From Klebsormidium nitens (Eukaryota > Plantae > Klebsormidiophyceae): 64,000 bases of DNA. Both the position numbers and the translations under genes were made by a program. The notes beneath the pieces were generated by a model. The model ran no database searches. It was not told the DNA's origin and saw only the letters and a list, made by a program, of their open reading frames with translations. Location: assembly GCA_000708835.1 (NCBI GenBank), contig DF237198.1, positions 1 to 64,000 of the forward strand, read 5' to 3'. How positions within the stretch are numbered: position 1 is the stretch's first letter; each line of letters begins with the position of its first letter. Positions 1,169-22,976 of this stretch are shown here, one piece after another.

Positions 1169-1431
1169 GTTACCATATGGTCACAGTTACGGTCCTAGTG
1201 TTAAGTTTTAGAGCAGACCGAAGGCGACTGGGGACTGCTGGCCCTGAGCCCTGGTGGATCAAGCTGCAAAGCAACAAAACACCAGCTCACAGGTACAGCT
1301 TCAGCTTCAACTTCAAGTTCGAGCGGAAATGTCTTCCCTTGGCCTTAGGAGCTGATACCGTAGCCAACTAGGCTTCAGTACGGTACCCGGCTCGTGTGTG
1401 TCTGTTTTAACTTTAGGAGTTTCAGGGGAGA

Positions 1432-4400
1432 ATGCCTTCGCCTATGGGGTATGATATCGTGCAAGAAGCAAGAGTGCAAATGCAGGGCACGGGGTCCGCA
1501 GCTGCAGGTCCACCAATGAAGGTCGAGAACACGCAGGGCATGGAGGCAGAGCTTGAATCGGATGCACAAGCTGCCAGTGATCCATCACTGTGAGGTTCCA
1601 GCTTTCTTTGTTCAAATCCACAACTCCCTGTTTCTGTCCGGGGATTGCATCAACCCTGGATCATTCGGTTGTCTTAGTGAAAAGCTTTCAAAATGCGATT
1701 GAACCAGCTCCATTGCAGCTTCTGCTTCATCAGCAATCAATGAGCCACATCAAACAAGTAGAAGCCATTATGAGCATTTCATCGTCGGCTGGTGGATTGC
1801 CTCCGGATCTTGATATGTTCTCCTGATTACTTGCTCCTAACCTTAATCAAGATGTTCTTAGAGATTCAATCGACAAAATGACGTCTTTGTTCATGTGAAC
1901 CAAGATGTCAAAGAGAATCTCATTAGCTTCCTATCTCCCAGGGATGTGAAGGAGCCCAGCCGCCGCAGGAGAGTGCCCAAAAGGGCATTTGGGGAAGAGG
2001 ATCAAAAGGCTGTCGAGGAATTCCTGATGGAGGAGGAGGGATCTACAAAGAAGAAGCGTCGACGGCGGTCATTGCAGGAGGTAAGCAGAGTGTATTTGCG
2101 TGCTTACAAGAGAGGATCTTGAAGATTTAAATGATGATCCTTGATGCTTGAGCGATTTGATAGCTAGCCAGAAAGAGATACGTTCTAATTTTTGGTCCAG
2201 CCTTTAGGAGTGCAGTACTTGCTTAGACCATCCACAGCTTTCTGCCCCATCGAATCATCTCGCCCCACAATCTCATCACATCACCATGCCGCCTAGCTTG
2301 GAGGTCTCTCCATTCTGCTGATAACCACGCTTGACAAAATCTTGTAGCATCATACACCATTGGTTCTAGAGGATTCTTGATGCAGAGCCAAATGACCCGG
2401 TCTCTTTCTGCAGGACGACCACATGGAAGCCATAATAGCAGCCGGCATGGGTTTCCCAAACAACTACCTAACTGAAGAAGAGATTCGTGCTGGAGTGGTG
2501 GGGTCGCTAGGGGGCATCGAGCAGGCAAACTACATCGTCATCCGAAACCACATCTTGGCAAAGTGAGGAGACAGTGCGGAATCCCAGTACACTTGTTTGA
2601 GATCGAGAGGTGATAATTAAGTTGAGTTCTCGGAGCTTACTTTTGTGACAAGGCATTTATGCTTTGAAGTATATCACTGCTGACGTGACCCCAGGCCTGG
2701 ACTTCCGAGCAACAGCAGAGTCTGGTCTTGTGAATGGCCAAAAGCAAACGGACTGTCCACTGAAATGAAGAAAAGACAATCGAAACAGGGGAAAACAGCA
2801 TTTAGATTCCTCGGCTTTGAGCCCTGAATCACCTTCCAGATATCAACTCGAATTACTCCTCTGCGAACCGCTGCACATTTCGATTATTTCGCTGACTCTC
2901 GTAACTTTCTGTGCCATTCGTCTTTGGCCATCGATCCATTATAAAAGTCAAAAATTCTGTCTTACAGAGTCCATTGATCACGTCAGCCAACCCTTCATCC
3001 CCCGCAGGTGGCGCCAGAACGTCGACAAGTGGCTGCACGAGAGCGCCATCCTCGAGAACATCCGCAACGAACACAAGCCCCTCGTGCGCGCTGCGTACCG
3101 CTTCCTCTCTCAGGCGGGGTACATCAACTTTGGCGTGGCCCCGGCCATCAAGGAACGCGTTCGCACCGACGGTTCCAAGGCGACTATGATTGTCATCGGG
3201 GCTGGGCTTGCCGGGTTGGCGGCAGCTCGGCAGCTGCTGGCGTTTGGTCACAAGGTGAGGACGAAAGTCATTATGGAGCAGAATACTCGGTCATTTGCAC
3301 CCGGATACAAATGTTCACTCCTCGTGTCTCTCCTCTTCGTCCGCCCCTTCCTCGTGTCCCTTCGCTTCTACTCTCCTGCTGAAGAACTTGCTAATCTTCC
3401 GTTTCGAGCGGAAAGGTTCAGGCTTGACCCTTTTTTTTCATAAGATGAAAGCGCTTTGTCTTTTACAGTATACCCTTAAGTACGTACAGGATTCAGCTAG
3501 AGCAATGGTGTATCCAGCTTACTTATTTCGGATAAGGATGGCTGTGGACGCAAGCAATGTGAGGTGATACAAAACCTGACGCCCCTCTTCTCCCCCCCAG
3601 GTAATCGTCCTTGAGGGCCGTGCCCGTCCCGGCGGGCGCGTTCACACCCGCCAGATGGACGCCGGTGGCCACTCCGCTTCTGCAGACCTTGGCGGGAGTG
3701 TGATAACAGGCACTGACGGGAACCCTCTCGGCGTGTTGGCCCGCCAATTAAAGCTTCCGATGCACCATATCCGGTCGGACCCGTGTCCGATATATGGTCT
3801 GGACGGGCAGAGAGTTGACGAAGAGTTGGATAAGCGGGTGGAGGCGGACTTCAATACGCTGTTGGATAAGGCGGAGGAGACGCGCAAGGCGATGGCCACG
3901 GTGGCAGACAGGTGAGCGGGCTGGCCCATAAGTTGTCGGTGTTTGCTGAAGGCCAAAGATTATGGCGTATTTCACGCACCATGTCGGTACAGATCTCTCA
4001 AAGAGGAGGTTTGTCAAAAGGTGTGAAAAGCAGGGAGTACGTGCGCCGTTTCTATTTCACAATCAGTCGCCAAACTTTTGCTCCTTGCAAGCGGACAAGG
4101 CTTGCGTCGGGTCTGATCGATTTCTTCGTACCGCCATTCTGTTTGGATCTCTTTCCAGCTCCTCCCCGACTGGGTTGAAGACGATTTTTTGTTCGGTCGA
4201 AGGGTCAGAACGGTTGTGAAGCTGACCAACTATACCCCTTTGGAAGAGGAGACTGGATTTCAGAAAACAAGAGGGTCATGAAGCAAACCCTTGTCATGAT
4301 CCTGTACAGCATCAGCCTGGGCTCGACCCTGGACACGCTGCGGCGGTCGTACCGCGTGGCGCAGTCGGAGGAGGAGCGGCAGCTGCTGGACTGGCACGTG

Positions 4401-7400
4401 GCGAACCTGGAGTACGCCAATGCGGGCCTGCTGCACGACCTCAGCCTCGCCTTCTGGGACCAGGTACGAGCCTCAGCTTGTAGTTTGTCCTCCTCATCTT
4501 CGAATTTGAGCTCTCTTTTCGAATTTCTGGCTCTGGCGAGCCTCTGAGAAATTTAGGTTCTTTTTTTGACAATTCAGTTGTTTGTTTTCAGCCGTTTCGT
4601 GTTCTTTCGTTCTAATGGGGCTCACGATGGGGCAGTGCAGTTACTTTTCTCAGACCATGGCCGGCTTTTGTAACTGTCGCTAACAGCGGTGCTGCTTCCT
4701 ACACATTTCGAAGACTGCGGGTTTTCTTCGAGAGTATGATGACGACGCTTCCGTTTGAAAGCTGAGCCGTCTAGATGATTCGCACTTCACCTGAGTAGCT
4801 ACACCTCCATGCTTCTTAACCAGATGCCCCTCTGCTTTTGTTGGAAACTTCGTTGTTCCAACGGCTTGACACTCCAACGCCCTAGACCTTAAACCTTGGA
4901 TCCCGCCAGAGCATACCATACAAGAGTCCAAGATTTCACTCCAAAACGACTCAACCCCTAAACCTGGTGAATTCTTTCTTAGGATGACCCCCACGAGATG
5001 GCCGGCGACCACTGCTTCCTGACCGGCGGCAATGGTCGCCTGGTGTCCGCCCTCGCGGACGGCCTGCCCATCTTCTACGGCCGGACCGTTCGGACAGTCC
5101 GCTACTCAGACGCCGGCGTCCGGGTGCACACTGCGGACGGGCAGGTCTTCGAGGGTGACATGGCGCTGTCCACGATTCCGCTCGGGGTGAGTCTACCGGG
5201 CCCTATGCCCTGGTCGTTCGGATCTCAAGTGATGATTCTTGGATCCAAGACTTGGGACTCTTATATCCGGAAGAGGAAGCCCCGAAAGAAGATTTCAGGT
5301 ATGCGTCTAGAGATAGAGAAAGTGCTCGCCGGAACACCAGCTCTGGTCGATTCCCCGTATAGTAAGTAAGATCAGCGGAACATCCTGTGATCCACCTTCT
5401 CAATCTATCTTTTCGCCTGAACTTGATAGAAAGCCGTCTGCAACATGCGGCACGCTCAGAAAGCTGTTGCTTTGGACCAATGTGGGACGACTGTGCCGGA
5501 TGGATACCTCCCCATCTATCAGATTGAGCACCGGATCGTCAGTGTTGAAGGACTCATGTCCTTTCGAGTTCGACCCCACGACTGCCAAAGTATCACGATC
5601 ACGAGAAACACGGAAGCTGACGTCCTCCCTGCAGTGCCTCAAGCGGGGTGACGTCACCTTCGACCCGCCCCTCCCCAAGGAGAAGGATGCCGCGATCCGG
5701 CGGCTGGGCTTCGGGCTGCTGAACAAGGTGGCGCTGCTATTTCCGCACAACTTCTGGGGCACCGATCTTGACACCTTCGGCCGGGTTGCACCGGACGCGC
5801 ACCGCCGGGGGGAGTACTTCCTCTTCTACAGGTGAGCTACTGTTGGTCAAGCTAACTTTGGAGTTCGAAATCTGGACCATGTATAGGATCTTCATGTATC
5901 TGCCGGATGTTCCATCACGTTGTTCGGCGGAAGTCGGAAGCTGCTGACGACATCGCAACTTCTCCTCCGAAAATCCTCTTAGCAGAGCCTCCCTCGCCCC
6001 CGACATTTCCTTAGCCGGGGTGATTCACTCCGAAAATGAAACGAGGCGCATCCGCTTGATACTGTCGACTTATCAGAATGTCGACTGAGAGACTGTCTCC
6101 CGGAGTGTGAAGAGAATGAGGTGGCGTTAAACTAATCAAAGCAGTAACCAGCAACCTTGACCTTCCGTCACACTTTAATCAAGCTTTTATCCCTTGAATC
6201 CAGAAATGCAAACCTCTGTTTCTCGCTCGCAGTTACGCGGCCGTCTCGGGCGGCGCCCTGCTCCTCGCGCTGGTCGCCGGCGAGGCCGCGCGGCGCTTCG
6301 AGAAGGTCCCCGGCGCTGACGTCATCGCTGAGGTCATGGCCATCCTGCGGTCGATTTACGAACCCCAGGGCATCCTCGTGCCCAACCCGCTCAGTACGCT
6401 ATGCACCCGCTGGGGCAGCGACCCGTTCGCTTATGGGTCGTATAGCCACGTGGCCGTCGGGGCGTCGGGGGACGACTATGACGTCATGGCTGAGAGCTGC
6501 GGGAACGGGCGGCTGTTCTTTGCGGGGGAGGCGACGACGCGTTGGCACCCGGCCACGATGCACGGGGCGTTCCTCACAGGTAGGGGTGTGCGCGGCGCGT
6601 TGGGGAAGATGAAAGGTTTGGGTTGGAGGAAGGAACGGAATTCCTTTGATCAGGGCGGCCAGTGCTGCTGACGCAACTGCACGTGATGATGATGGTCCCA
6701 CCATGCCTGAATTGGGACGTACAGTCCACTTTGTTTCTGTCATTGAAAACCGACGGTATATGCTGCTTACTGCAGTGCGTATCCGTTCGATCTGAGAGCA
6801 TTGATCGAACACAGGAGGATGGACCCATATTCCTGCCGTTTTCAATTCTTCGCATAGAGTTGACCTCTAATCTGGTTTTTTTGGGCTTTCGCTTAAATGG
6901 GAAGTTTTAGTACTTTACTTTACTTTACTGGCCTCATCAGGTCAATGAGGTGGTAACCAGGGTCAGCAAATCCAAAAAGTTGAAAGATGCATTTTTAACG
7001 GCGTTAACCAGGACCAGCGAAACCAGAAACTTGGAAAATACTCGTTCAAAGCGGGATTGTGCTCCGCAGGTCTCCGCGAGGCAGGCTGGATGGACGCGAC
7101 TGCCACCGCGCGCGCGCAGGGCCAGCCAGTGCCCGTCCAGATTGCGCCCTCCAGCCTGTCGCTCCAGGCGGTCACGCTCGCCGAGGTGTTCCGGAAGCCC
7201 GACATGGAGTTCGGCGGCTTCTCTGTCGTGCTTGACCCCAGGTGCGAATCAGAGCTCTGCTTTGTTTGGAGCTGAGACCCGTTGAGACGTGAAGAAAAAG
7301 AAGTTCAGGGCTTCGTTGCTGCTGGCAGGATTGGGGGCTGAGACGCGGCCTCTTGAATACATGTGAGGGTTTATGGACCGGCTCATCTTCGTTGTCATTA

Positions 7401-10400
7401 TTTTGGAACCTCGTCGTTATGGTAAGGTTACATCTGCTGCATCCGCCTTCCTCCCTTTGATACGCAACGCACTTACCCTTTCAGAAACCTCATAAGAGCG
7501 CTCTTGCTCTCCATAATCGTGCCGATCCTCTCCAAAGCTGTCGCCAAGCTTGTCTTCAACCTTTTTCCATTATCTTTTCCCCTTTGTCACTCTCATCATC
7601 CGCAAAGTACCTTTAAAAAGCCCAACGCCCCTCTTTCGTCCTTTACCCCAGCCAAGAATCTCTTTAATACGTGAGCCCTGACTCGTCGCTATCCTATTAG
7701 ACCTGACCCTCCAATCCTGGCAAAAGCACATTCCCGTCCGGCCTCGCCCTTCTTGGTTTAGACCTATGGTTTAGGTAGGATAGTCCCAGGTAGATTATGG
7801 TTATGGCCCGGCGAACGGGTGGGGTTAGGGTGGGTACGGGTGCGGAGCGGGTGTATCTGTCGGTTTGGGCTTTTAATTTTGTTTTCCCTGGGGACTGTTA
7901 CTATCGTACAGAGAAACTATCCTACCTAAGTTATGGGAGTATCTTCTTGGGCGCGGGGCCCTCCTTCACTATTCCCTTTGCAGCCTTGCATTTCAGTGGC
8001 CCTACCTCTAAAATGCAGAACGCCCCTGTACCTACTTTTCCTCCCGCCAGGACCTCCCTCACATGCGTAACCAACCCGTTTCCTAACCCTTGCGTTTCTG
8101 CCACCCCCAGGAGCTCTTCTTCATCCGCCCCCGCCCTCTTGCGCCTGATTCTGCGCAGCCCCCAGTCCCTTACAAAGCCTCTCAAGCCGCCCCAAGACAC
8201 CGAAGCAGAACCCAAAACCACCGCCAAAACCACCTCCAGCCATCCCAATGGTAACGGTGCTGCAGCGCCGAAGGCTGCTGTCTCCGCAAACCCAGCGGTT
8301 AGCCAAACCCTTGGGAACCTCCCCAACGCTTCCCGTTTCAGAGTACCAGACGGTCTTGCGCCCGGTGCTGCTCCAGGGGTAAGCCCAGAGTTGGATCAGG
8401 CAGCGGAAAGACTTTCGGAAGCCAGGCAAGATACGGGGAGGGGGGCCGCAGTTGCTCAAGGGACGGGCCCGGTTGTCACCCCCCTGCCGGGAACACGCGA
8501 AACTTTCCCGGGGTCTGAATCGTTGAAAGAGCCGGACCGAGGAGATGGGATACGGACGGGGAGCAGCGAGATAGCCGGAAATGTGAATGGACTTTCGGGT
8601 GCGAACGGATTCCACGCGTATGGGCGTATGAGAGCTTTTGCGCAAGCGGTTGGAAGCGGGTTGGGCTCGGCAAATGCCGAATCAGGTCTGGCAACAAGCA
8701 GCCCAAAACCGGCTGGGTTAGGGCTCGGACCTTTGGGGTTAGAATCCGAACCCTTTTCCCAGGGGAACAACGGCATTGGGGGGGAGCCCAATCGGACTAG
8801 TTTCGTTGCGAGCAGCGTTGCGCCTGTGGAAAACGGTGCCGGTTTCGGCGACGAAGAGAGACGCCCCGACAACACTATGACGAAGCTCTTCTCGTTCCTG
8901 AAGACCGAAGCGTTGAAAGTGTCCCCCAGAACCCCCCCGCCAGTTGGCGCATTCCCAGTCAGCGGAATTCCGGTCAGCGGAATACCGGCCAACGGAATAC
9001 CGGCCGCTCCTCCGGGCGGAACAGTCAGACCGGCCAGCGCTCTCAGGGTCGAGCCGACGGATGCGCGAACGGAAAGCCATTCTCAGGCGAGCGACACCGG
9101 ACGGGCAGCTCAAACAGCTGTCTCAAGTCACGGTGTGAACACGCTTTCAATGCCCAGGCCTGAACCGAGGTTCCTCGGGGCCGCTGTGCCGGTTCACATT
9201 AGTGCAAATAGCGGCATGCCAGGGGCGGGAACTGGCGGTGAGAATGTGCCCGGGGCGTGTCGACTTCTTCCTTTTGCTTCTGCTCGCCCGATGCCCGTCC
9301 AAAGTCCGCAACTGGACGTCCGAAATACGCCTTTGGAAAGTCCGGCAAGTCGGATACTGAATCCTGCCATTCCAAGCTCTTCAAACGGTCCACAGACGAT
9401 GAACGGCCCCGCTTTGCCTGTCTCTACGGGCGCCCAAACGGGAACCGCTGCGGGGTTGGTACAGAACCGGACTTCTCACATTGCCAGTGCCCCGGTTACC
9501 AGACCCGCCGTCGAAAACTTGGCAGATGCAAGGCCGGAGAGTACTTCGGTGGGAGCAGGGGAGAAAGGCGGCACGAGTCCAGGGAGTCAGCCGTCCGATC
9601 TGGTCGACGACAAATCGACGGTCTTAAAAGTCCCGGCCGCAAATGGAGACGCCAAGGGGGGGTCCAAGAAGAAGCCGGCGCAAGTCGCGGGAGCGGCAGG
9701 GGGGAGGAAGAAGCGGCGGCGCGCCGCCCCGACGGACGCATTTACACCGCCCCAGAAGGAGCTGGCGGTGTATACGGTGGTAACGCGGGGCCAGGCGGAG
9801 CAGCTGAGGGAGGTCAAGGGGGGGGACCGGGCGCGGCTGCAGGTGCGTAGAGGGATCCCTCGAGTTTTGCCCTCTTTCATGGAATGCCTTTATGGAATTT
9901 ATAATTTTTCGACGTGTTATGGCAATACTTAGGAGTATAGCCCGGGTTCTGGACGCTGTTTTCGACTTCAACGTCAACGTGAATTGCTTGAGACTTTGTG
10001 TCGTTGAAAAGGACTGCCTTGTCGTGACTGCATTCTTGGCGAACCTTCTCTTAGCTTTGTCAGCTAGAGCAGGCACTCGTTAAAACGGCGCGCATTGACA
10101 CCAGTTGATTTTCTACATCTTGACAGACCCTAGTCGACACATTCGGTGTCAAGTTGGTGGGCCGGCACGGGCTGGGCTCTGCGGGCGAGGCGCTGCTGGC
10201 GGCGCTCAATGGGCCCCACCTGGTGGCCGGTGGGCTGCTGCCACGTGGCCAAGCTGACATTATGAAGCGTATGAACAAGGCCAAAGAAGTCACGGAGGGC
10301 AACGGCGTTCGGCAACAAGTGCGGCCCCGGCAAAGCAGGCCACAAGCGGAGCCGGAACGAGAGGGGATTGCAAAATCGGAGCCACGTGTCCTAAAAGCAG

Positions 10401-10468
10401 CAGTACGAACCACCGTGACAGCGTCGGTTAGCCTCAGCAAGCCAAAACCTGAGCCCGCAAGTTCTTAG
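1432..10468 (+). CDS. FLD: LSD1-family lysine-specific histone demethylase (SWIRM + FAD amine oxidase), FLD/LDL1/LDL2 clade; multi-exon
   Basis: Approximate exons: 1432-1589, 1942-2080, ~2413-2562 (GFPNNYLTEEEI...GGIEQANYIVIRNHILAK, SWIRM), ~3008-3253 (VIGAGLAGLAAARQL, FAD-binding), 3601-3911, ~4310-4463, ~4983-5186, ~5635-5831 (GFGLLNKV, catalytic Lys), ~6232-6579 (WGSDPFAYGSYS, FFAGEAT..HPATMHGAF), ~7069-7241 (FRKPDMEFGGF), 8111-9842, 10127-10468 (FGVKLVGRHGLG). Splice phases are consistent where checked. The choice of FLD over LDL1/LDL2 is tentative. Confidence 0.93.
7771..7929. repeat. 14-bp perfect inverted repeat in an FLD intron (possible mini-MITE)
   Basis: TTAGGTAGGATAGT (7771-7784) pairs with ACTATCCTACCTAA (7916-7929). 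TA is present at both ends. Confidence 0.4.
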
Positions 10469-11517
10469 CACGGGATGTTTTATTGACCTAGCTTCTGCCT
10501 TGGCGAATCATAAAGAAGGTCTACGCAAACTTCGATTGTCCTCATTAGTTGGCAGATCCCAGGCCTCGATGTTGAAGATCTCCGTAAGTAGAGGTAGCAG
10601 GATAGGGGATTGTACGCTGCGGGAGCTCAACACTTGAGAGAGGAATGAGACTTGCCACGGGGTTTCCGAGATTTGACGATTCTCGGAGTTTCCACATCGA
10701 TTTTCACACTCTGTTAAGTGTTGAGCTTCCATTGCGTACAATCCTCTAGTCCAGCCGTTTCGTCTCTTTTCCGGACTTGCAAGGTTTCGAGCATTGAGGG
10801 GTCGAGACTCGCCCATGCAGTGAGCACGTTACAGTGGCTTCTATATGGCAAACTCAATTTCATCAAAAGGGTTGTAAGAGCCAGGGACTTTTACAGACTT
10901 GAGCATGCAAGTTTGACTACGGTATCATGGCATGCGTATAGGTATTATTTAACATGGTTTCACAGAGAGTGGCTGCGGGCGGCCGTGCTCAGTGCATGAG
11001 TTGATCGACCGGGCTGCGCACATGATCTTGCTGAATTATAACCAGGCCGGGCCGCTCAACCGTGCACATGCCTTTTCAATACATATGCTGCACCCTTCCG
11101 AATCCCTAGCGCCACTGTTTCGCTACACCCTCGTCATTGGGCATGTCAGTGCACCATTGGCTGCAAACCGGCATGCATGCGCAACTTGCACTGCGCCATG
11201 CACAAAAAGCAGGTGCATCCGGGTGTATGTGCAATGCTAAGCAACATGTTGCATACCATTTGATGGAACAGTCAGCACATGCCATATCACTATACCGTAC
11301 ACAAGCAAGAGAAGGATATCCGGTGTGCAACTCAATGTGTTTGTAGCTGGCCCTCGAGAAGCCCGAGTATTGTACCCCCATGTACCCTCTCGTGCAGAGC
11401 CCGCTGCACGGCTTCCCCTTTCTGTTCCAGAGTCCAGTCTTCCGTGCCATTCTGATCTGCAAGGAGGAGAACAAAGTCAACTCCTGCCAAAAGCAGAAAT
11501 CTCAGTGGACTGCCTTA

Positions 11518-11906
11518 GGGTGTCGTTCCACGAGCGGTGGTGGAAGTCAGCAAAATAAATAAAAGATGTGGCTCTGAAGTGGCCGGAATTTGCCTGGAAG
11601 TTCAATATATTACCAATTTCCGGCCGCTCGTGGAATAGCTCGCCGGTGGAAGTTGCATTTAAAAAATGCGCACTTACTGCTTAATCCGACATGGCGTCGT
11701 CTCATTCGCTGATAGGGTGCCACGTCCCGGCACAGAAAAATGTTTTTGTTCGACCCTACAAATACTCGGGTCGAGTTTTAATAAAAGTTGTGCCGCCGAC
11801 GTGGCATTTATTTGCCCGGAAGTCCGCCCGTTGACCGACGGCAGAAACAATTCGGGCCAATCAGGGAATTTATATTTCTACTTCCACCGCTCGTGGAACG
11901 ACACCC
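11518..11906. mobile_element. PIF/Harbinger-type (Tourist-like) MITE, 389 bp
   Basis: Perfect 23-bp TIR GGGTGTCGTTCCACGAGCGGTGG / CCACCGCTCGTGGAACGACACCC. Direct TTA target duplication at 11515-11517 and 11907-11909. Internal copies of TIR sub-motifs at ~11624 and ~11644. Confidence 0.88.
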
Positions 11907-12023
11907 TTACACATTGGCACCAGCACCAAGCATTTGTAGCGCAAATGCAGACTCACAGCATGCTCTCGACTTCAAATTGACCCCAGAACGACGTGTGCAA
12001 TACTAGCTCAACATACGGGTTGC

Positions 12024-15000
12024 TCACAAACCGCCAGAGTAGTCCAATCGCCCAACGTATTTCCCCTCGGACTGGACCGAGGAGAGAGTCGCTGCAACAA
12101 GGAGATCATGCAGCAAACCTCCAGTGACTGCGCCCTACCGGTCAAACTTCACCCCCCTACTCTTTGCTGACGTCACCACACACAAAACAAGCGCTGCTGA
12201 CGTCATCCGGAGCTCACCCCGCAGGAGCGCCTCCCACGCGGCCCGCGCAGCGCCGTGCTCTGCGCTCTTCTTCAGCTTCTCGTACGGCCCTTTCACCGCC
12301 AAACCGCCCACCGAAACCGTCGCGCTGTGCAGCGGCTCGTGGACCAGCCCCTCCGTTTCCAGCGAGTACTCCGGAATTGGACACCTGGCGCGCACGCACG
12401 CGGTTTGCAGGAGGCCCTTGTAGTCTTGGAAGCCCGGCTGCAGAGAAGGACGGACACGTCGCAGGCTCAGCCGTCTCGAAGATGCGGAGGAGGAGCCCAG
12501 ATTCGTTTTTGGGAAGGTCCACGAGTCGGGATGACTTTCTCAACAAGCCTGGGACTTCTAGCACAGAAAAATTCCTGTCCAGAACTGTGAACAAGCACAG
12601 ACGGCACACGCCAGTGGTTATAAGAAGAGAAGCAAAATGCCCGTTGAAGCCAGGACTGAATATTCACAGCGAACTTCTGCTCTTAGTACCTTTTCGTTAC
12701 TGTGATCAACGGCGGATGACGGAATAGAATCCTTAAGCCACTTCCCAGGGTCCCTCAATAAGGACCCCAGAACACGAGCCGTTCTGGAGGTTCTCTAAGA
12801 GCGTCAACTCAAGCCTTTGTTTGGACCGGAGCACGGTTCGATGGCGCCTCCGGGAGTCTCAGCACAACCACTTCCATCGAACAAGCAGGATTTGCAACTC
12901 GAAAAACACCGGTTTGGCAAGTATACCTAGCGGCGTCTGATACGCGCGCGGCCCGTCTTGCAAACATGAAGCCCACCTTGAAACTTGTGCGACAGATCAA
13001 CAGGCCTTGACATCCAAACCCCGCCCTCACCGGCCACCTTGGTGCGCGGTCCTTGTGTGGCAGCGGGTTCTTGAGCGTAATCGGCATGCCGGACCGCAAG
13101 TGTTCAAGAATCTCCACCCAATGAAGTCAAAATCACGAAATCTAACTAACAAACTCTACTGAACGCATCCTAACCAACAAAGTCTGACCCCGCCCTCACC
13201 GGCCACCTCGGCGCGCGGTCCTTGGGCGGCCGCGGCTTCTTGGGCGGGATCGGCACGCCGGACAGCTTCCGGTCCGCGTCGGGGCTCGGACGCACAAGCA
13301 CCGTCCGACCCTCGCGCTTCATCACTCGCACCCCGTACTTGCACGCGTTGTACGCGTCCCGTTCCGTTGACCGGTCCCGGCGTTGCAGCCAGGAGGGGTC
13401 GAGCGTTACGCCCTCCACGTCCCTGGCAGCGAGAAGCTTAGAAGATTTGGTTTTGGGGCAGATTGTGAAATGGGATTTGTAAGCTTTAGGAGGGTCATTG
13501 CATGCTCCCGGTTCCGTCGACCGGGCCCAGGGTTGCAGCCAGGCGGGGTCAAGCGCCACGCCCTCCACGTCTCTGGCAGAGGGAAGCTTAGAGGATTTCG
13601 GTTTGGGGCAGACTCCCTGATTTGGATACTTAGGCTTTAGGAGGGCTGTTGTATTGGACTAATTGTATTCAATTCTCGGGGTAGTCTAGCCACGCCGGGG
13701 GTCGAGCGCTAACCCCTCACGTCCCTAGGCCGATCGGGAGACGTTAGANNNNNNNNNNNNNNNNNNNNNNNNNNNNNNNNNNNNNNNNNNNNNNNNNNNN
13801 NNNNNNNNNNNNNNNNNNNNNNNNNNNNNNNNNNNNGACTCCCTGATTTGGAGTACTTAGGCTTTAGGAGGGCTGTTGTATGCAATGATCAATTCTCGGG
13901 GTGCAGCCACGCGGGGTCGAGCGCAACCCCCTCCACGTCCCTGGCGATGGGAGACTTAGAGAATCTCGTTTTGGGGCAGAATTGTAAAGTGGGGTTGTAG
14001 GCTTTAGGAGGGTCGTTGTACGCTCCCGGTTCTGTCGACCGGTCCCATGTTGCAGCCAGGCGGGGTCGAGCACCACGGCCTTCACGTCCCTAGCAGAATG
14101 AAGCTCAAAAGGTTGTGATCTGGAGCGGATTCGAGAAGTGGGTGTAGTGAGTTTCAAGAAAGTCGTTGTAAACGTCTCTTCTTCTGTAGTGAAAGTTCTC
14201 TGCTAACCCCTGTCGATCTTTGACTCCGTCAATCCCATCGGAGCGGAGCACTTCCCCTCTTCTTGGCTGCTACTGCGCACCCGACGGACGCATTTTTCCG
14301 TTCAGTGATTGATCCAGCGGGGAGAAAAGCAGAATACGGTAGCCCAAAGACTGCTAACAAACTCTCAAACCTGGTTTAAGAAACCTAACCCGTGCCCGCT
14401 CCTGACAGACTTCCTACTCCGTCTCCTGTACATACAGGTAACCCCTCCGTAACCGATCTTTGAACATAAAGCGACATGCAGTCTCGTGCCGACTTCTCTG
14501 AGCTTCAGGCACTCTTGTGCGCACTGGTAAAAAGGCCTTTACGAACTCACCGTCTGAGCGTGATCAGCCGCTCGTTCAGCTCCAGCACCTGACTGTACTC
14601 CAGGACCGCGTCCTGCATGTACGGCCGTCCGATCGTCCGCATCCGCGCCGCCTCCAAAAGTTCCGCGACGGACCCGAACTTTTCGATGAGCTTGATCGCG
14701 GAGTTGCGTCCAAATTCGGGGACGTAGAACGGCAGGCCCCGGATGGCGTCCGATTGGTCGCCCAAAAGGCAGCCTGGAAAGCGGGTGAAAGGGTGTGTTT
14801 TGGGAAAGGCAAGGCGACCGAGAAAGGAGTGGCATGGAGTCTGTGAAAGTGTCCCAGTGGTCGCTGAAAAGGCTGTCAGAAAGTTAGGAAAGGAGGGTTG
14901 TCGTCAATCCAGGAGGGCGACTGAGTAACCCTGGTCTCCAAGGTAGTGGTCCCCTTAGACTGGTCGCAGGCAGCTTGGAGAATCACATGAAGTATGGCTC

Positions 15001-17267
15001 GAAAGTGACATGGGAAATCAGCAAAGACTACGAAATCGAAAGAGTGACGTCGATCTGGCGGAAAACCAAGAAACAAGAAGCAGCTCGACAAAGTCAACAA
15101 GGTAAAAGAGGGACCTCAGCACTGCGTCAAGCAAAGAAGGCGCCAGCGAAAACCGCCCCCACTGCCAGACTTGATCGGAGACGTTTTTGAAAACTAGACC
15201 CGCTGATAGGCACTCACGAAGTAGGACGAACTTCTCGGGGGGGTACCCGACCCGCTCTTCGAACTTGCGCCCGTCAAAGAAGTTGAATTCACGCATCAGC
15301 TCCGCGCGGGGCGCCCAGATGGAGATGCGCTCGTTCAGCAACTGCCGCAGGTCAGTGTCTGCAAAAAGGGAACGATTCCGTTTTCCTGTACCGATCGGTG
15401 TTTGAAGCTGCAGCATAAGGAGAGTCGCCCACTATTTCCAAGAGCTCCTTTTTCTATTTTCCAAGCTGAGACGTTCAACCAACAAATTCACAACCCAGAA
15501 ACTTTCTCTTCATACGCAGCATCTCTAAACCTTACCGAAGGTGGATGCAATTAATCTGACAGGTGGCAGAAAAGGATGGGCTGGTGGATAGCTCACCCGG
15601 AGAGACAATGTTCACTCGATGCCCCATGTCGACGGCCTGCTGGGCCAGCGTCGCAATGACGTCATCCGCCTCCGCGTGGGGTACTTTGACAATCTGTCCA
15701 GGAATTCAGTGTTTGATCCGCATTCATAGCCTCGAATTGATCCACAAAACTATTCGAGCCGACAAACACCAGATGCAAAGCGTCACAAATCGCCTGGAGG
15801 GGCGCAGCAAGCTTTTGACGAGAACGGAAGCGAACTTATGAGAGACTGCCATTTGGCCTTCTGCATGCTTTTTGTTTTTTATCCTCCCATAGACATCGCC
15901 TCCCGGTGCTGTACACTTTCCAACTGACAAGGTCTTCGGCTAAAGGCCTATGATTTTAAATCTTGCCATATCGGAGATGAGTGCAGAAACATGGAAGGCG
16001 CGGAGTGTATTCAGAAGACACACTGCTCACCGGTATGTTCAGAAGCCTGAAAAGGGGTTCCAGCATGGGCATGTTCTCAAACGGGTCAATGTGCACGCGG
16101 TGACGGTTCCGCCGGTGGCCGATTGTCGGCCATGGGTGGTACAGCTTTCGACCCGATTTGTAGTCGGGGTAGAGTTCGCGGCGCCACGCATTGCCGTTGT
16201 CCCCGTCCAAAACCTGCAGCAAGTCTTTTTGAATTCAGAGGAATGTGTGGTAGAGACACCTGTCGGGATTGGTGAAAGGACGCCCCCTGGTTGCGGCCCC
16301 AGTTTGACTTCAAAGACATAACCAAAACTTGCGTTTCAAACATCCTGAGGAGCAAGAAAGGGCAGATTGTGTTGATAGGGGGCAGATTGGCTTGACACGG
16401 TTTAAAGCAGGACACTCAAGAAAGGAAGGAGTGATAGGAAGCTTTCTATGAGGGCAATCCCGGGTAAAACCCAAAAGCCCTAAATCCGTGAAACCCAAGC
16501 CGGCTAGTGGATCCCACCCCAATGATTGGCGAGTCCCCTGAGATGCCAATCAGCGCCTCCATCCACTCCAGGCATGCTCTGGGGTCCAGCTTGCCTCGCC
16601 CCCGCCCTCGATAACAAATTGGCATTATGTCCACTATATACACAACCGGCTTTGAGGGTCGCCGATCGAACGCCTCATTCTGTGCCACGGACACTTCATC
16701 AAGGCTGATTGGAGAGTCTGATGTTGCGTCATCGGCGGCGGTTGCTTCTCTAAGGTCCGAAGAAGGGTTTTGGGTTTTGGAGTCTAGATGAGAGTTTGCG
16801 GTTTGATGTCCTAAGTGGTGTGAGGACGTAGCGCTACTGTGAAAACTGGTTTCAGCAAGCTCCTCCTCAAGAGGACTTTCAGGCGCTATGAGAGCGGCGG
16901 TGGTTTCAAAACTTTCAAGCCGCTCGGACCGTTCAAGCTGCTCATCTGCCCCACCACTGGACTCCGAACAAGAACCCAACCTCACTTCACCATCAGAAAG
17001 ACGTGGAAACTCTTGAGCGCAATGCCGTTGCGCGCTATTTTCACTCAACTTCGCCAAACCCTCTCCTACTCGGCATTGGCACCGCACTGCGGATTCCGCT
17101 CTTGACTTGCTCTCACGGATGTTCCTGGTGCCGAACCCTAATGGAAAGTGCACGCTCGATGCTAGGGTGGTGCGCTGCAGAAAGGGGTCGGGACCACCAA
17201 GAAGTTGTTGCGAAACACTTGCACTCGGGAACAGGAAGCATCTGTGTGTGCCAAATGCAGCTTCCAT
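12024..17267 (-). CDS. OEX2: Organellar (plastid-type) 5'-3' exonuclease/flap endonuclease, OEX2/At1g34380-like, with a C-terminal dsRNA-binding domain
   Basis: Exons: 17267-16518 (transit-peptide-like N-terminus, YIVDIMPICYRG), 16213-16031 (VLDGD..WRRELYPDYKSGR), 15693-15597 (EADDVIATL), 15358-15218 (DTDLRQL), 14773-14551 (CLLGDQSDAIRG..FGRNSAIKLIEKFGSV..RTIGRPYMQDA, H3TH), 13422-13200 (RDVEGVTLDPSWLQ), 12437-12218 (dsRBD), 12091-12024 (stop). All junctions are GT-AG and in phase. Confidence 0.85.
13370..14100 (-). repeat. Tandem array (~150-bp unit, at least 5 copies) of the 3' splice acceptor plus the 5' end of OEX2 exon 6
   Basis: The unit AG|(G/A)GACGTG.AGG...GACCCC.CCTGGCTGCA recurs with exon starts at 13422, 13572, ~13724, 13940 and 14089. 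The array is interrupted by an N gap. Confidence 0.9.
13749..13836. other. Assembly gap (88 N) inside the tandem array
   Basis: Run of N; the flanking repeat copies look indel-rich or low quality. Confidence 0.99.
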
Positions 17268-17739
17268 GATTTCGGTGGGGCTGCAATTTCTTTGTAAATG
17301 ATAATGGTGGCCCTATGGTGGCCAGAAAATGACGTGATGCCCTTTGTCAGTGGGTGCTGTGAAAGTTTTCTACAATTCAGCGAGTGTGCCACCTTTCATC
17401 AAGGCTCAGAAACTCTCCTGACGCCATTTGAATGCAGCGCCCAGAAACCCACACACACCACACACCTGAAAACCTGCATGGAGTTGAAAGTGAGTTGCTC
17501 TAGGCCTGTACTAATAGTAATACTAATAGTAGTAGTCGAGCAATTTGAAGAAAGGTATGACAATCTCGATTTTTAAGGGTTTTGCTTCGGGATTTTGGGG
17601 AAACCCTCTCCTGCTGAGCTCCTCATGAACCTGCCTTGGGCTTAAACGCCTGCTGAGTCCTGCAACGGGGAGGCCGCTTTGTTCACCTGCGGCTGGCAGC
17701 ATTGCCCTTCTCAAGTGAGGTTTTTGCTGACCAGGCAGG

Positions 17740-20700
17740 ATGGACTTCATTCGATATCTTTCTGAGCTGCCTCCTGTGAAGCTCGACCGGCTGTATGAGA
17801 GCCACTTCACCTGCCAAGCAGTCCTCAGGTAAGGTGTGCTTCAGTACATGGTGGTGCAATAATGGATGAAGTTCTGAGACCGGATCTTTTCTGGTCGAAG
17901 AGATTGCATTCTGCTCTGCAGAGGGACAATTTTGTAGTGCCACAGCCACTGATTTTGCGCTGTGGAATCTTTGCATTGATGCTTAGCAACGTGCGAGTGG
18001 CTGCCAAAAGGCGATGCCGTCCACTTCAACCAATTGCTTTTCTGAACTGGACCTTCTGACCTGTTGCTGCAAGTAAGTTGGACGTGATTATGCTTGTGAT
18101 CACCTGGGAGACCTGCCTCCAGACTGACTGTCTGGGCTGAAAATAAGCAGCGACGCACTTTGAGGAACTCAATCCCCTTCTCTTTCCTCCTGCCCGCTTT
18201 TTAAGCTGGGCATGGCACTCCTACCTTAAAAGCCCCTCTACTTAAGCCCAAACTCATGAGGATCTAGTCTTGCTGAAGAAAAACAACTGGCTCCGCTTTG
18301 CAGGTCCTTGCCCCCCATCGCCAAGCAATATGTCCTTCGGTTACTGTTCATTGAGCAGCCGATCGCTGGCGAGACGATGCGGGGGTGGGCGAAACCAGAG
18401 GCGCTTGGGAAGCACAACGCTGCAATGGAAAGGCTGGATCAGCTGCGGGTGCTACTAGAGACGGGGGGAAAGTGAGTGCTCTCCATGTGATCATGCTTCT
18501 TGAGAAGTCTGAGCCGGTGTCTTGGATTTCTATCCCCCCACCTGGAAGCTGGTGCAACCAGTAACCAACATAGGGAATCTTAAGACCTCAGGAGGGTCCT
18601 GTGCATATTGATCGGCGTGATGTGTCTCAGTTGGTCATGATTTTGCATTGTGATAAGGCTTCAGGAAATATCCTGACACGTCGCCTGATACTTGTCCCGA
18701 AAAGGGTAGCACTGGCAGTGACTTCCTTTCATCACAATTGCGGCCAATTGATAATCAGCATTTTCATGCCCCTCCTTCCTTCAACGCTTCCAACCTCCTT
18801 CACTCCATATGTTTCACTTAGCATTCCCCTCCCCCCTTACTTCTTTCCCAGTTTCTGATCTCCCCTGCCTCACCTGCGTTCCACCGACCCCAAGGACTTA
18901 TCCAGACCGGTTGTGGTGCTTCCCAGTCGCGCCAACAGTCCTAAGCTTATAGGTCGTTCAGATATCTTCCTCTCTTTCGGCAGGTCTGGCAAGAAAGACG
19001 CTTCATACCGTCTAAATCCCGTCTTCCAGCAACAACTCCAACGCGCCCTCTCCGGTGCCATCGGTCCTCCAAAAGATCCCCTCCCCCCCGCCCTCGCATC
19101 CCATAAGCCCTCCCCCGCAGACCTAAATGCATACGCTCTAAAGCAGTGGGAATCACTGCTCTTGTTTCTGGCCAATGCGGGGGCGCCAGGTGGCGAAAGG
19201 AGAGGCGACCAGGAGCCGAGTAAGATGATCAAGGGGCTGCTGAGGAGGGCGGGGCTGATGGGGACTTCGGACGAGGGGGGCGTTCGGATATCGGACGAGG
19301 GTTTCCGGTTTTTGTTGATGGACTTGTATAAGCAGCTGTGGGTCGTGGTGCGGGAGTATGTGGCGGAGATTGAGGTGAGGAGTGACGTGATCAGTTTGTC
19401 TGCCTTAATACAGCAGGCTGGTTGCTGTTAAGTGGTGACGGTGCGTGTGTTAAGTATGAGTAGAGGTTTGCCCTTGTTCACTAGAGCGGAGGCGCATAAG
19501 CCAGTGAGCAACAGAGGTTTGAATGTGTGAAGAATCGTTCCGACACTGTTGACCACCTCATTTTCTGGAGGGCGATCCACGTCATTCAAGGCATTCATAC
19601 ATCGATAATCACTATACATGCCTGTCGCTTTCTGTTGGCTTTTTGGAAAAGTCTTACTTCACGACAGAGAGTAGTCAATCCGTTCCTGTCTGAGCTCTCC
19701 AACGTTGCGGACTCAACAGACATGGTTTAAACGTTCAAGAAGTCCTTTTCGCCTCGAAATGTTCTGATTCAGATGCAAAAATCTCAAGAGGAGAGTTTTC
19801 ACACCCTTGCAGGACCAAGGCCTGGACGGCGCCCAGGTCACGTGCTTTCTGATGGAGCTTGGGTTCTACCCCCTGGGCGAACCACACGGTGTGAACAGGC
19901 TCTCCAGCCTGCAGAAGCGAGTCGTGGAGGACCTGGCGAGCGTGGGGCTTGTTTATATTCAGAAGGTGAGAAGCGAATTCGTTTGACGACGTATTTGAGG
20001 AGAAGGCAGAAGCTGGGACGTTCAGTAAAGATGACGAGCAGGGAAGATATTCGCGAGTTCCACGGATCACTAACCTTTGAATCGTGCTGACAGAGCTATG
20101 GGACACCGTTCTATCCCGTTTCAAAGTGCGTCTTTCAAGCTGCTCAGGTGGGAAATGCTTTCGAAAGCCGCTCTGCTCGTCACGAGCGGAAAGAAAGCAT
20201 TCAGTGGCTTAAAGTTGTGGGGCGTAATGCGCGAAGCCATCAGAATGAATTCGCTTCTTTAAGTTGAACCTTTCCTATCATTTAAACAAGCGAAGTTTTG
20301 ATGCTGGCGCGCATTCGCAGGACGTCAGCTTCGTTGCCGGAATGCGGAAGCGACCGTTTACTTTAGAAGCGTGTAGGAACCCTCCCGTGAACCTGCGGTG
20401 CAAGACAGTCATGAATCGAAGGGCTCGACAGAGCGATCCTTTGTGAAATGTTCAAGTGTCTTTTTTTATAGGCTGGCGGGCAGTCCTGCTTCTACCCGAC
20501 GCGGCTTGCGTCAAATCTGTCGGCCAGCCTATCAGAGTCCTCCACGTGGCAACCAGCCGAGGGCTTCATCATCGTGGAGACCAACTTCCGAACCTACGGC
20601 TACACCACTTCTCCTTTACAGATTGCGATCCTTCGATTGTTTACAAGGTGAGAGCTCAAAAGGGGGGCTAGAGAGGGCGAATGTGGATTGTTAGAAGGAC

Positions 20701-22976
20701 CGCAAGAACCCCGGTACCTCTGGACCCTTGTCCTCCCTAGCCTTGTCGTTTGAACCCTTTTGATGTCTGCGGTCTCTTATTTTATCTACCGTATCTCAAT
20801 CTGTCTGCGGGCCCTTGGTTTTTTTGTCGCAAACGCACATGGGCAAACTAGACGCATCGATCGTTGTAAAAGGATACCAAGGTTTGAGCAACAAAAAAGG
20901 AAGGCGTTTAGCATGAGCATTTCCAGCACTGGCTGAGGAAGCGGAGTTTGCTAAGAAACTGAAAGAGAAGCGCGTATGCAGGATTGAGTACGTGTTGCCC
21001 AACCTAGTTGTGGGGACCATCACGCGAGAGAGCGTCAACACGGCCTTCTCCAACGGAATCACAGCCGATCAGGTGAGGAGCGGAACGCCATTACCACTCT
21101 CTCGTTCGAAATGCAGCCCTACCATTTGCGTGAGCACGAAAACGATGCCGATTGTGGCCGACCATGCGTGTGGCACCGCAGAGCCGCCAGTGCTGCCGAC
21201 AGAGACTCCTCGATCGAGGAGGTTTTGGCCTACGGACGGTTGTGGGCTGGTCATGGAATGGTTCGAAAGTGGTTAGAAAGTGGTTAGAAAGTTATATGTC
21301 AAAGAATCAGACTTGGGCGGTAATCAGCCTTGGAATGGTCCGGTTGTTTGTCCAAGATTCAAGTTTAGTTATCAGCCTGTTGGCAGTCAAACCTTTTGCC
21401 CGACTCTTCTTTAAGGAGAAGTCGCCACTGAAGGCACTTATCCGTGCTACACACGTGGCGGAGTGTAGCACGTAAGATAAAGTCATTCATCGCCGGGCAA
21501 GTCAGCCAGGGCAGGCGGTTGAAGTCCAGTCTTCCTGGCACTCAGAGTTGCAAGAGCTTCAAGAAGTTACACGTCTGCGCGCCGGATGTTGCAGATGCAG
21601 CCTTAGATCCGGCAGTTCGCACAGATTATTTTTGTGTACCTTCGCATCAGCCAAATTCCCGCGTTGCGCAGACACGCACATTATAACCCCTTACGTTCGA
21701 CCCCTAATTTGCTTCCAGGCTCTACAACTCTCAATTCAAAGCGTTCGTGCATCTCCTGCAGCAGGCGGCGCCCCAAATCCGACAGCGCGTATGCTCATCT
21801 CAACCGTTAAACTTCAAAACCCAGATCGTTCCCTCTTTCCAAAACCCTGCAATTCGCATTCAGATTGGCATGTATCTCCAGCAACACGCGGTGCCCCAGA
21901 TGTTTGAACCCCTACACTTCAAACCCAGATTGCTCCACTCTACATAAAATCCACAATTTTCATGCAGATCGCTCCCACTCTAAATAAATCCACTATTGTC
22001 ATGCAGATCGTGGCGTATCTTCAGCAGCACGCGGCGCCCCAGATCCGGCAGCGCGTGCCGGTCGTCCCCGAGACGGTGGCGGACCAGGTGCGGCTGTGGG
22101 AGCGCGACCGGAACCGGGTGCAGCAAAGCCGGGCGGTGCTCTACGAGGAGTTCCCCTCGCAGGTGAAACAATTGCCGGATCTCCGTTTGGCTTTGTCTCC
22201 AGCAGATGAGTTTCTTTTCAAAGTGCTGTTTGTAATTTTCCTCGCAATTAACGAGGTCTCCTTGCCTTGTCCACTCCCCCTCTTTGGAGCTTCCGTCTCG
22301 GGTCCATTTTCCTCTTGGAGCTTTTGTCTGTACGAGCTTTTTTTCTGGTCGTTTAAGTTTCGTTTTCTTTCTCGGGTATCGTTTTGTTGAAGTCGGTCCT
22401 CTTTCGAGCACTGACGTTTCGTCGCAGTTGCGTGTTGTCCCAAATTAACCTTGCTTGTACATTACGTTTTCATTCTTGGGTACTCTTGTCGTAGCCTGCT
22501 CGAGTAATGCTTTTTGGCCACAAGTCTCAAAAGTCAATGCTGTGCTAGGCGCGCTATTACTTCATTACTTTTGGGTTACCGATGCACTGTTTGCGTCCTC
22601 CGAGGAGCTCTACGCAATCACGAGCGGATGATTTGGGGAACGAATTTGTTACTAGAATCGTGTTGCCCGTTCTCCGGTTGAAGAGGTGTTCGTGTTTGCG
22701 ATTTATGTCTTCCAGAGATCGAGCCAATCCGTTCTTTCGGGTTGCCGCCACCGCTTGTCTGATCTTCTACGGTCTAAAGCCTTCGAGATTCCGGCGTGTT
22801 TCTGACGGCGACGCGCCCTCTCTTGCTGACGTCAGGAACGGTTCGCGGCCGTGGTGGATTATGCAAGGCAGGTTGGGGCGCTCTTGTGGCAAAATCCGAT
22901 TGAGCGGCGGTTCGTGGCCAGTGACGGGCGGCATGACGACATACGGGCGTTTATTCGGAATCAGAGTCGGACTTGA
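17740..22976 (+). CDS. TFB2: TFIIH subunit p52 (Tfb2/GTF2H4); multi-exon
   Basis: MDFIRYLSELPPVKLDRLYESHFTCQAVLR | SLPPIAKQYVLRLLFIEQP | ...ISDEGFRFLLMD | ...FYPTRLA...EGFIIVETNFRTYGYT.SPLQIAIL | EYVLPNLVVGTITRESV..AFSNGITADQ | IVAYLQQHA...VPETVADQVRLWERDRNR | last exon 22829-22976. Confidence 0.95.
21745..22006 (+). repeat. Degenerate duplicated acceptor/exon-start fragments in a TFB2 intron
   Basis: 21745-21790 and 21861-21901 resemble the real exon start at 22007 (CAG|ATCGTGGCGTATCTTCAGCAGCACGCGGCGCCCCAGATCCGGCAGCGCGT). A ~39-bp tandem duplication places two ATGCAG|ATC acceptors at 21967 and 22006. Confidence 0.8.

Follow-up and report, generated by a model that had tools for sequence, protein, structure and literature searches.

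A PolI-type 5'-3' exonuclease joined to a double-stranded RNA-binding domain in the alga Klebsormidium nitens

Plant organelles divide the functions of bacterial DNA polymerase I (PolI) between a polymerase (POL1A/B) and a stand-alone 5' nuclease (OEX1/2). We analyzed a 64,000-nucleotide stretch of the Klebsormidium nitens genome (contig DF237198.1, positions 1 to 64,000 of assembly GCA_000708835.1; referred to here as the window) and found that it contains a gene in which a nuclease of this type is fused to a double-stranded RNA-binding domain (dsRBD). This nuclear gene, which has the identifier kfl00249_0020 or KFL_002490020, lies on the minus strand and has eight exons with a coding sequence from 17267 to 11332 that encodes a protein 653 amino acids long (Table 1). 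The protein begins with an extension of ~200 amino acids followed by a PIN-like and helix-three-turn-helix (H3TH) nuclease, a linker of ~60 amino acids, one dsRBD of the type found in plant DRB proteins, and a C-terminal helix. The gene is real, expressed, and conserved; it is a variant of an enzyme family that is already known, and the variant is restricted to one lineage. As for what it does, the explanation we consider best, with somewhat better than even confidence, is that it encodes a divergent PolI-type nuclease with an OEX1-like function that uses its dsRBD as a tether.

The gene was modelled by joining exons at GT..AG sites on the minus strand of 11800-17500, which gave an open frame through seven exons. 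Sequence words of 11900-17300 were present at 24-57% in 20 of 24 run sets from seven studies, a share that fits the expectation for exons only (modelled at ~0.4 of the stretch). We then read the splice joints from transcript contigs of four runs, representing four studies and two organism labels. All four runs joined exons 1 to 7 identically across six introns, and the joints matched the predicted exon borders; each had CT..AC ends on the plus strand, corresponding to GT..AG on the minus strand. Exons 1 and 2 were linked by joint 16211/16516 (cut +2) in every run. The original prediction had proposed that the nuclease exons are spliced from 13200 to 12437 into a dsRBD exon. This joint was present in single contigs from all four runs and places the nuclease exons in frame with the dsRBD exon, the translation of which (12437-12218) is as first written. 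Two contigs (X12 record 7 and X9 record 13) each span exons 1 through 7. The runs are labelled just 'RNA?', yet their contigs skip canonical introns, indicating that the source was spliced RNA. Thus, the fusion of a PolI-like 5' nuclease, containing PIN-like and H3TH parts, to a canonical dsRBD was confirmed as both real and expressed.

The 3' end of the gene differed from what had been proposed. Downstream of 12218, the contigs of all four runs continued for 29 to 212 letters and had a unique match in the window at 11428-11456, directly following an AG acceptor (...ttgcag). The last exon is therefore 11456-11332 and the lower limit of the gene is 11332, not 12024. Through this exon the frame continues for 41 more codons to a TGA and the translation is identical to the C-terminus of the deposited protein GAQ85684.1. 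In a close relative (locus L004), 11473-11327 is 88% conserved, and the region of 12091-12024 shows no separate conservation at the orthologous locus. No joint in any of the four runs supported the closing exon at 12091-12024 that had been predicted. This candidate lies within intron 7, which the transcripts remove by going from 12218 to 11456, and it was ruled out. In each of the four runs, unspliced contigs crossed the exon-7 donor (11900-12247), with little or no coverage of the other introns. This signal is either retention of intron 7 or pre-mRNA. Reading the frame, the intron-retained form would end at a stop 30 codons past the dsRBD and would lose the C-terminal helix.

We considered whether the fusion could be an artefact of the gene model or the assembly, such as two neighboring genes read as one or a misjoin across a gap. 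An assembly gap (N, 13749-13836) and a repeat array do lie within the locus. However, the gap falls within intron 5, which every one of the four runs splices out (joint 13421/14550, cut +1), so the continuity and frame of the coding sequence are unaffected. In addition, single contigs from four studies span the nuclease and dsRBD exons through canonical GT..AG joints, the GenBank model includes both parts, and three other assemblies have the same exon order and synteny. We consider an artefact extremely improbable; it is refuted by the transcript contigs and by the exon order in the relatives.

A word search with the open reading frame of exon 1 led to KFL_002490020, deposited as GAQ85684.1 and as UniProt A0A1Y1I419 (439 amino acids). 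This deposited protein corresponds to residues 215-653 of our model, so that its C-terminal part already has the dsRBD and ends with the correct last exon. It starts at Met215 and is without the 214 N-terminal residues encoded at 16625-17267 of the window, including the catalytic residue D213. The longer start is backed by transcript contigs and by conserved first-exon open reading frames of 232-273 amino acids in the relatives, and the start itself is conserved in L004 and in L005, a JGI metagenome contig. The analysis thus yields a corrected gene model with 214 added residues that contain a catalytic aspartate and a possible presequence. In a 2014 review (PMC4166229), kfl00249_0020 and kfl00340_0150 were listed as the two K. 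nitens 5'-3' EXO candidates for primer removal, which makes kfl00249_0020 a candidate organellar 5'-3' exonuclease. Both genes were flagged there as being without a first methionine and the dsRBD was not mentioned. The location prediction in that review failed for KFL_002490020 because the deposited model is truncated at Met215. Full-text literature searches for the gene identifier, for an organellar exonuclease with a dsRBD, and for H3TH with a dsRBD returned nothing beyond PMC4166229, and none of the papers found, that review included, names the dsRBD. The suggestion that this protein was uncatalogued is thus incorrect, since the protein with its dsRBD is already in GenBank and UniProt and the gene is listed in PMC4166229. 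What is already known is the deposited protein and its candidate status; the dsRBD fusion is apparently undescribed, as we found no paper reporting it.

Protein searches used either single exons or the deposited 439-amino acid model (P0155) as queries. In P0155, Pfam identified both PF02739 (5_3_exonuc_N; 76.6 bits versus a cut-off of 34.3) and PF01367 (5_3_exonuc; 43.6 bits versus a cut-off of 40). When exons were analyzed one by one, 5_3_exonuc_N was found in exons 2 and 3 and 5_3_exonuc, which has the H3TH / SAM fold, in exon 5. All nine of the metal-binding acidic columns defined by D or E in eight references are kept (D213 to D399, Table 1). Both Pfam domains and these catalytic residues identify the predicted protein as a PolI-type 5'-3' exonuclease / FEN. 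It is a divergent member of this family. The 5_3_exonuc_N score compares with 97-192 bits in nine other scanned homologues, and the top non-self matches are ~33-36% identical over the nuclease half. Relative to eight homologues, the K. nitens protein has insertions of 13 amino acids after YKSGR, in the arch, and of four amino acids in the H3TH. When the nuclease domain was placed in a tree, the K. nitens branch was 2.9 substitutions per site and fell outside the OEX1 clade (SH-aLRT 100), where its position is only tentative and carries a long-branch warning. Its two nearest neighbors there, P0181 and P0191, are without the K. nitens-specific insertions, and this grouping was treated as long-branch attraction. 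Elsewhere in the tree, bacterial RNase HI-FEN homologues of ~480 amino acids (P0159, P0163, P0190, P0239, P0244, and others) formed one well-supported clade. Look-alikes in the ESM Atlas (scores of 0.88) were uninformative.

The dsRBD is contained entirely in exon 7. This exon alone matched Pfam PF00035 (dsrm) with 29.6 bits and P0155 matched with 24.3 bits, against a cut-off of 23 and over the full length of the model (1-66 of 66), so the domain passes the check by hidden Markov model (HMM). The alpha-beta-beta-beta-alpha signature noted in the original prediction was borne out by an AlphaFold model of residues 465-653, which contains H81-92, E98-106, E109-118, E121-124, and H131-148 in a block with predicted local distance difference test (pLDDT) scores of 87-93, and by Foldseek, which returned DRB3 dsRBD2, HYL1 dsRBD1 (TM 0.90, root mean square deviation 1.2), and DRB4 dsRBD2 as top matches. 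Using the dsRBD in a phmmer search of the PDB, we obtained matches to DRB4 (E 3.5e-12) and DRB2 (8.9e-11) of Arabidopsis, and also to DRB3. A GxxH loop and a KKxAE motif fit the DRB consensus, and the loop histidine and KKxAE are invariant in K. nitens and its three relatives. Among the matches listed, the closest dsRBDs outside the relatives belong to land-plant DRB proteins (37-45% identity). Plant DRBs (DRB2, DRB3, DRB4, and HYL1, which are cofactors of Dicer-like enzymes) are thus closest by both sequence and structure. However, each of these has at least two dsRBDs and lacks a catalytic domain, whereas the K. nitens protein has a single dsRBD fused to a nuclease and is without the tandem architecture of the DRB family. 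A streptophyte gene of the DRB2/3/5 type is the probable source of the dsRBD, with the capture taking place in the Klebsormidium lineage.

The exon-6 linker has 52 of 75 columns invariant in the four species, including the block TVLVRPSPDADRKLSG, and it was modelled poorly by AlphaFold (pLDDT ~60). The C-terminal tail exon is 90% conserved in L004 and is predicted to form a helix. It was not detectable downstream of the dsRBD exon in the more distant L001 and L005, and the tail helix may be a recent addition or fast-evolving. In the N-terminal ~200 amino acids, the first ~80 are neutral to basic and hydroxylated and the following ~120 are acidic, a compositional pattern that occurs in all the relatives. 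The first 80 residues are compatible with a presequence, and the plastid location given in the original prediction is no more than a possibility, beside a mitochondrial one.

An exhaustive HMMER search with the dsRBD exon returned two close single-domain matches (71% and 88% identity), both of which were open reading frames called on the genomic contigs L001 and L004. The nuclease, linker, and dsRBD exons occur in the same order in L001, L004, and L005, and the splice sites of the dsRBD exon are kept in all three. The ratio of nonsynonymous to synonymous substitution relative to L004 was 0.02-0.15 for each of exons 2-8 (dsRBD, 0.15; linker, 0.11; tail, 0.08). Thus, the fusion is under purifying selection. 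We also searched for this architecture more widely. Precomputed Pfam lists omit even the dsrm domain of P0155; hence nine long homologues were rescanned with Pfam and a dsRBD HMM was run on 241 nuclease homologues, made up of ~120 best matches of the K. nitens protein and ~120 land-plant OEX1 orthologues. P0155 was the only protein with a match, and the HMM found no dsRBD in the 240 others. Conversely, a FEN domain was found in none of the best 150 matches of the dsRBD exon by hmmsearch, which extend down to ~52 bits. Besides the open reading frame fragments of two relatives, these were multi-dsRBD, DRB-like proteins. Two metagenome scans, one with an alignment of the linker and one with an alignment of the dsRBD, gave no further match. 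As far as sampled, the fusion appears to occur only in K. nitens and its three close relatives, which limits its reach.

One of the closest known enzymes is Arabidopsis OEX1 (At3g52050), which is also a nuclear-encoded, stand-alone PolI-type 5' nuclease; it shares the catalytic acidic residues and likewise begins with an N-terminal extension. RNA:DNA hybrids and R-loops are substrates of OEX1 (OEX1 paper), and recent work has shown that the enzyme removes both R-loops and RNA primers. The K. nitens protein differs in being ~36% identical to an OEX1 orthologue and outside the OEX1 clade, in having the arch and H3TH insertions, and in having a linker, dsRBD, and tail that are absent from ~120 OEX1 orthologues. 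A match from Wolffia belongs to the OEX1 family; its orthologues occur in isoform pairs that differ by 18 amino acids, as is the case for OEX1a/OEX1b. By analogy with organellar OEX1 and the PolI 5' nuclease, the K. nitens nuclease would excise RNA primers and flaps and would also strip R-loops of their RNA strand. Its dsRBD, carried on a flexible linker, would tether the enzyme to an A-form duplex, either an RNA:DNA hybrid or dsRNA, and this tethering would make the enzyme locally more concentrated or more processive on RNA-containing substrates. The protein would then be targeted to R-loops or dsRNA.

Designs of this kind are known from other nucleases. Eukaryotic RNase H1, whose hybrid-binding domain is N-terminal, and RNase III, whose dsRBD is C-terminal, both rely on a small binding domain and a flexible linker to hold the nuclease on an A-form duplex. 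Their catalytic folds differ from that of the K. nitens protein and the hybrid-binding domain of RNase H1 belongs to a Pfam family other than dsrm. Bacterial RNase HI-FEN proteins (PF00075, PF02739, and PF01367; ~480 amino acids; for example in Desulfuromonas, Geomonas, and Pelotalea) likewise combine a PolI-type 5' nuclease with a module for RNA-containing duplexes, although the added module is a catalytic, C-terminal RNase H rather than a binding-only dsRBD. We count this analogous pairing in favor of a tethered nuclease.

Several observations weigh against a tethered, organellar, OEX1-like enzyme. Canonical dsRBDs favor dsRNA and bind RNA:DNA hybrids weakly. This makes targeting to hybrids the weaker half of the proposal and leaves dsRNA targeting or protein docking as live alternatives. 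In helix 1, the glutamate through which dsRBDs usually contact RNA is replaced by threonine in all four species. The nuclease is unusually divergent, so that its range of substrates may have shifted. The N-terminal extension is long and mostly acidic, and the linker contains a basic, proline-rich patch (KKPRPPK) that resembles a nuclear localization signal; both count against an organellar location.

One alternative is that the dsRBD does not bind nucleic acid and is instead a protein-interaction module that mediates dimerization or docking to a partner such as a polymerase, helicase, or RNase III-like enzyme, in the manner of HYL1 dsRBD2 or the contacts of DRB4 and DRB7.2. The threonine in helix 1 fits this idea, as do the good sequence and structure matches to the second dsRBDs of DRB3, DRB4, and DRB2 and the Foldseek matches to the DRB7.2:DRB4 and DCL4-DRB4 interaction structures. 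However, the invariance of the loop-2 histidine and KKxAE and the superposition of the model on dsRBD1 of HYL1, which binds RNA, weigh against this reading. We regard a purely protein-binding role as unlikely, though still a live alternative.

Another alternative places the protein in the nucleus or cytosol as an RNA-directed 5' nuclease. Its substrates would be dsRNA or structured RNA, in silencing-related or antisense RNA decay for instance, and its DRB-type dsRBD would serve it as in Dicer partners. DRB-type dsRBDs are used in small-RNA pathways (PMC7994812). The KKPRPPK patch, the acidic N-terminal region, and the position of the protein outside the OEX1 clade are consistent with this. By contrast, bacterial PolI-type nucleases in the green lineage are so far known only as the organellar OEX1 and OEX2 (OEX1 paper), the protein retains its H3TH DNA-binding motif and every metal ligand, and the presequence-like character of the first ~80 residues is found in all relatives. 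This explanation seems to us rather improbable.

The original prediction described the protein as OEX2-like. Arabidopsis OEX2 (At1g34380, plastid) is similar in being a second, fast-evolving 5' nuclease paralogue of streptophytes, and K. nitens also has two such genes (PMC4166229). OEX2, which we compared by description only, differs in being land-plant-restricted; OEX2 has been reported in land plants only, and land-plant OEX1 and OEX2 both consist of the nuclease and H3TH only (OEX1 paper). That kfl00249_0020 is an algal pro-orthologue of land-plant OEX2 is a tentative proposal that we think doubtful, but it bears on when OEX2 arose in streptophytes. If correct, the second organellar 5' nuclease would predate the Klebsormidiophyceae split, contrary to its published land-plant origin, and the DRB-type dsRBD would be either ancestral or gained in the Klebsormidium lineage. 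A module of small-RNA pathways would then be tied to the removal of R-loops or primers from organelle genomes. More generally, the K. nitens protein is a natural variant in which the nuclease has its own predicted duplex-RNA-binding module, and it offers a handle on how such enzymes find RNA-containing substrates.

Table 1. Exons and selected introns of the nuclease-dsRBD gene, in window coordinates.
Feature	Position	Strand	Description
Exon 1	16518..17267	-	ATG at 17267, donor GT; N-terminal extension of ~200 aa and nuclease start with D213
Exon 2	16031..16213	-	Part of 5_3_exonuc_N; VLDGDNG...YKSGR motif, D253; 13-aa arch-region insertion
Exon 3	15597..15693	-	Part of 5_3_exonuc_N; EADD motif (E319, D321, D322)
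Exon 4	15218..15358	-	DTD motif (D344, D346)
Exon 5	14551..14773	-	H3TH / SAM-fold DNA-binding part; GDQSD (D396, D399); PF01367 36 bits alone
Intron 5	13423..14550	-	Assembly gap N 13749-13836 and repeat copies; spliced out in 4/4 runs
Exon 6	13200..13422	-	End of nuclease domain and linker; ends KDRAPRWP, phase 0
Exon 7	12218..12437	-	Whole dsRBD, alpha-beta-beta-beta-alpha
Intron 7	11457..12217	-	Contains the earlier-proposed exon 12024-12091; unspliced contigs in 4/4 runs
Exon 8, last coding	11332..11456	-	41-aa tail, predicted single long helix; TGA at 11334-11332

In L004 and L005, collinearity with the window extends to both flanks of the gene. In the neighboring genes in synteny (window 1425-10478 and 17736-22164), exons are conserved and introns have diverged. 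The downstream neighbor is an amine-oxidase / SWIRM (LSD1-like) gene, present in L004, and the upstream neighbor is a TFB2-family gene, present in L005.

The introns of the gene contain copies of exon-6 sequence. Upstream of the real exon 6, intron 5 repeats the acceptor and the first ~30 codons of this exon in at least four diverged direct copies (window 13348-14129), which lie around the N gap. This array was missed by Tandem Repeats Finder and was recovered by a second repeat search. Just the last of the acceptors (13422) is joined to exon 5 in the four transcript contig sets. At least one extra copy of the exon-6 acceptor is also present in L004 (3808-3885). In intron 6, the 3' end of exon 6 and its GT donor recur as an 80-nt copy with 86% identity (window 13018-13097), near which coverage in run X1 was low. 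This copy could serve as a decoy or provide a minor alternative end for the exon.

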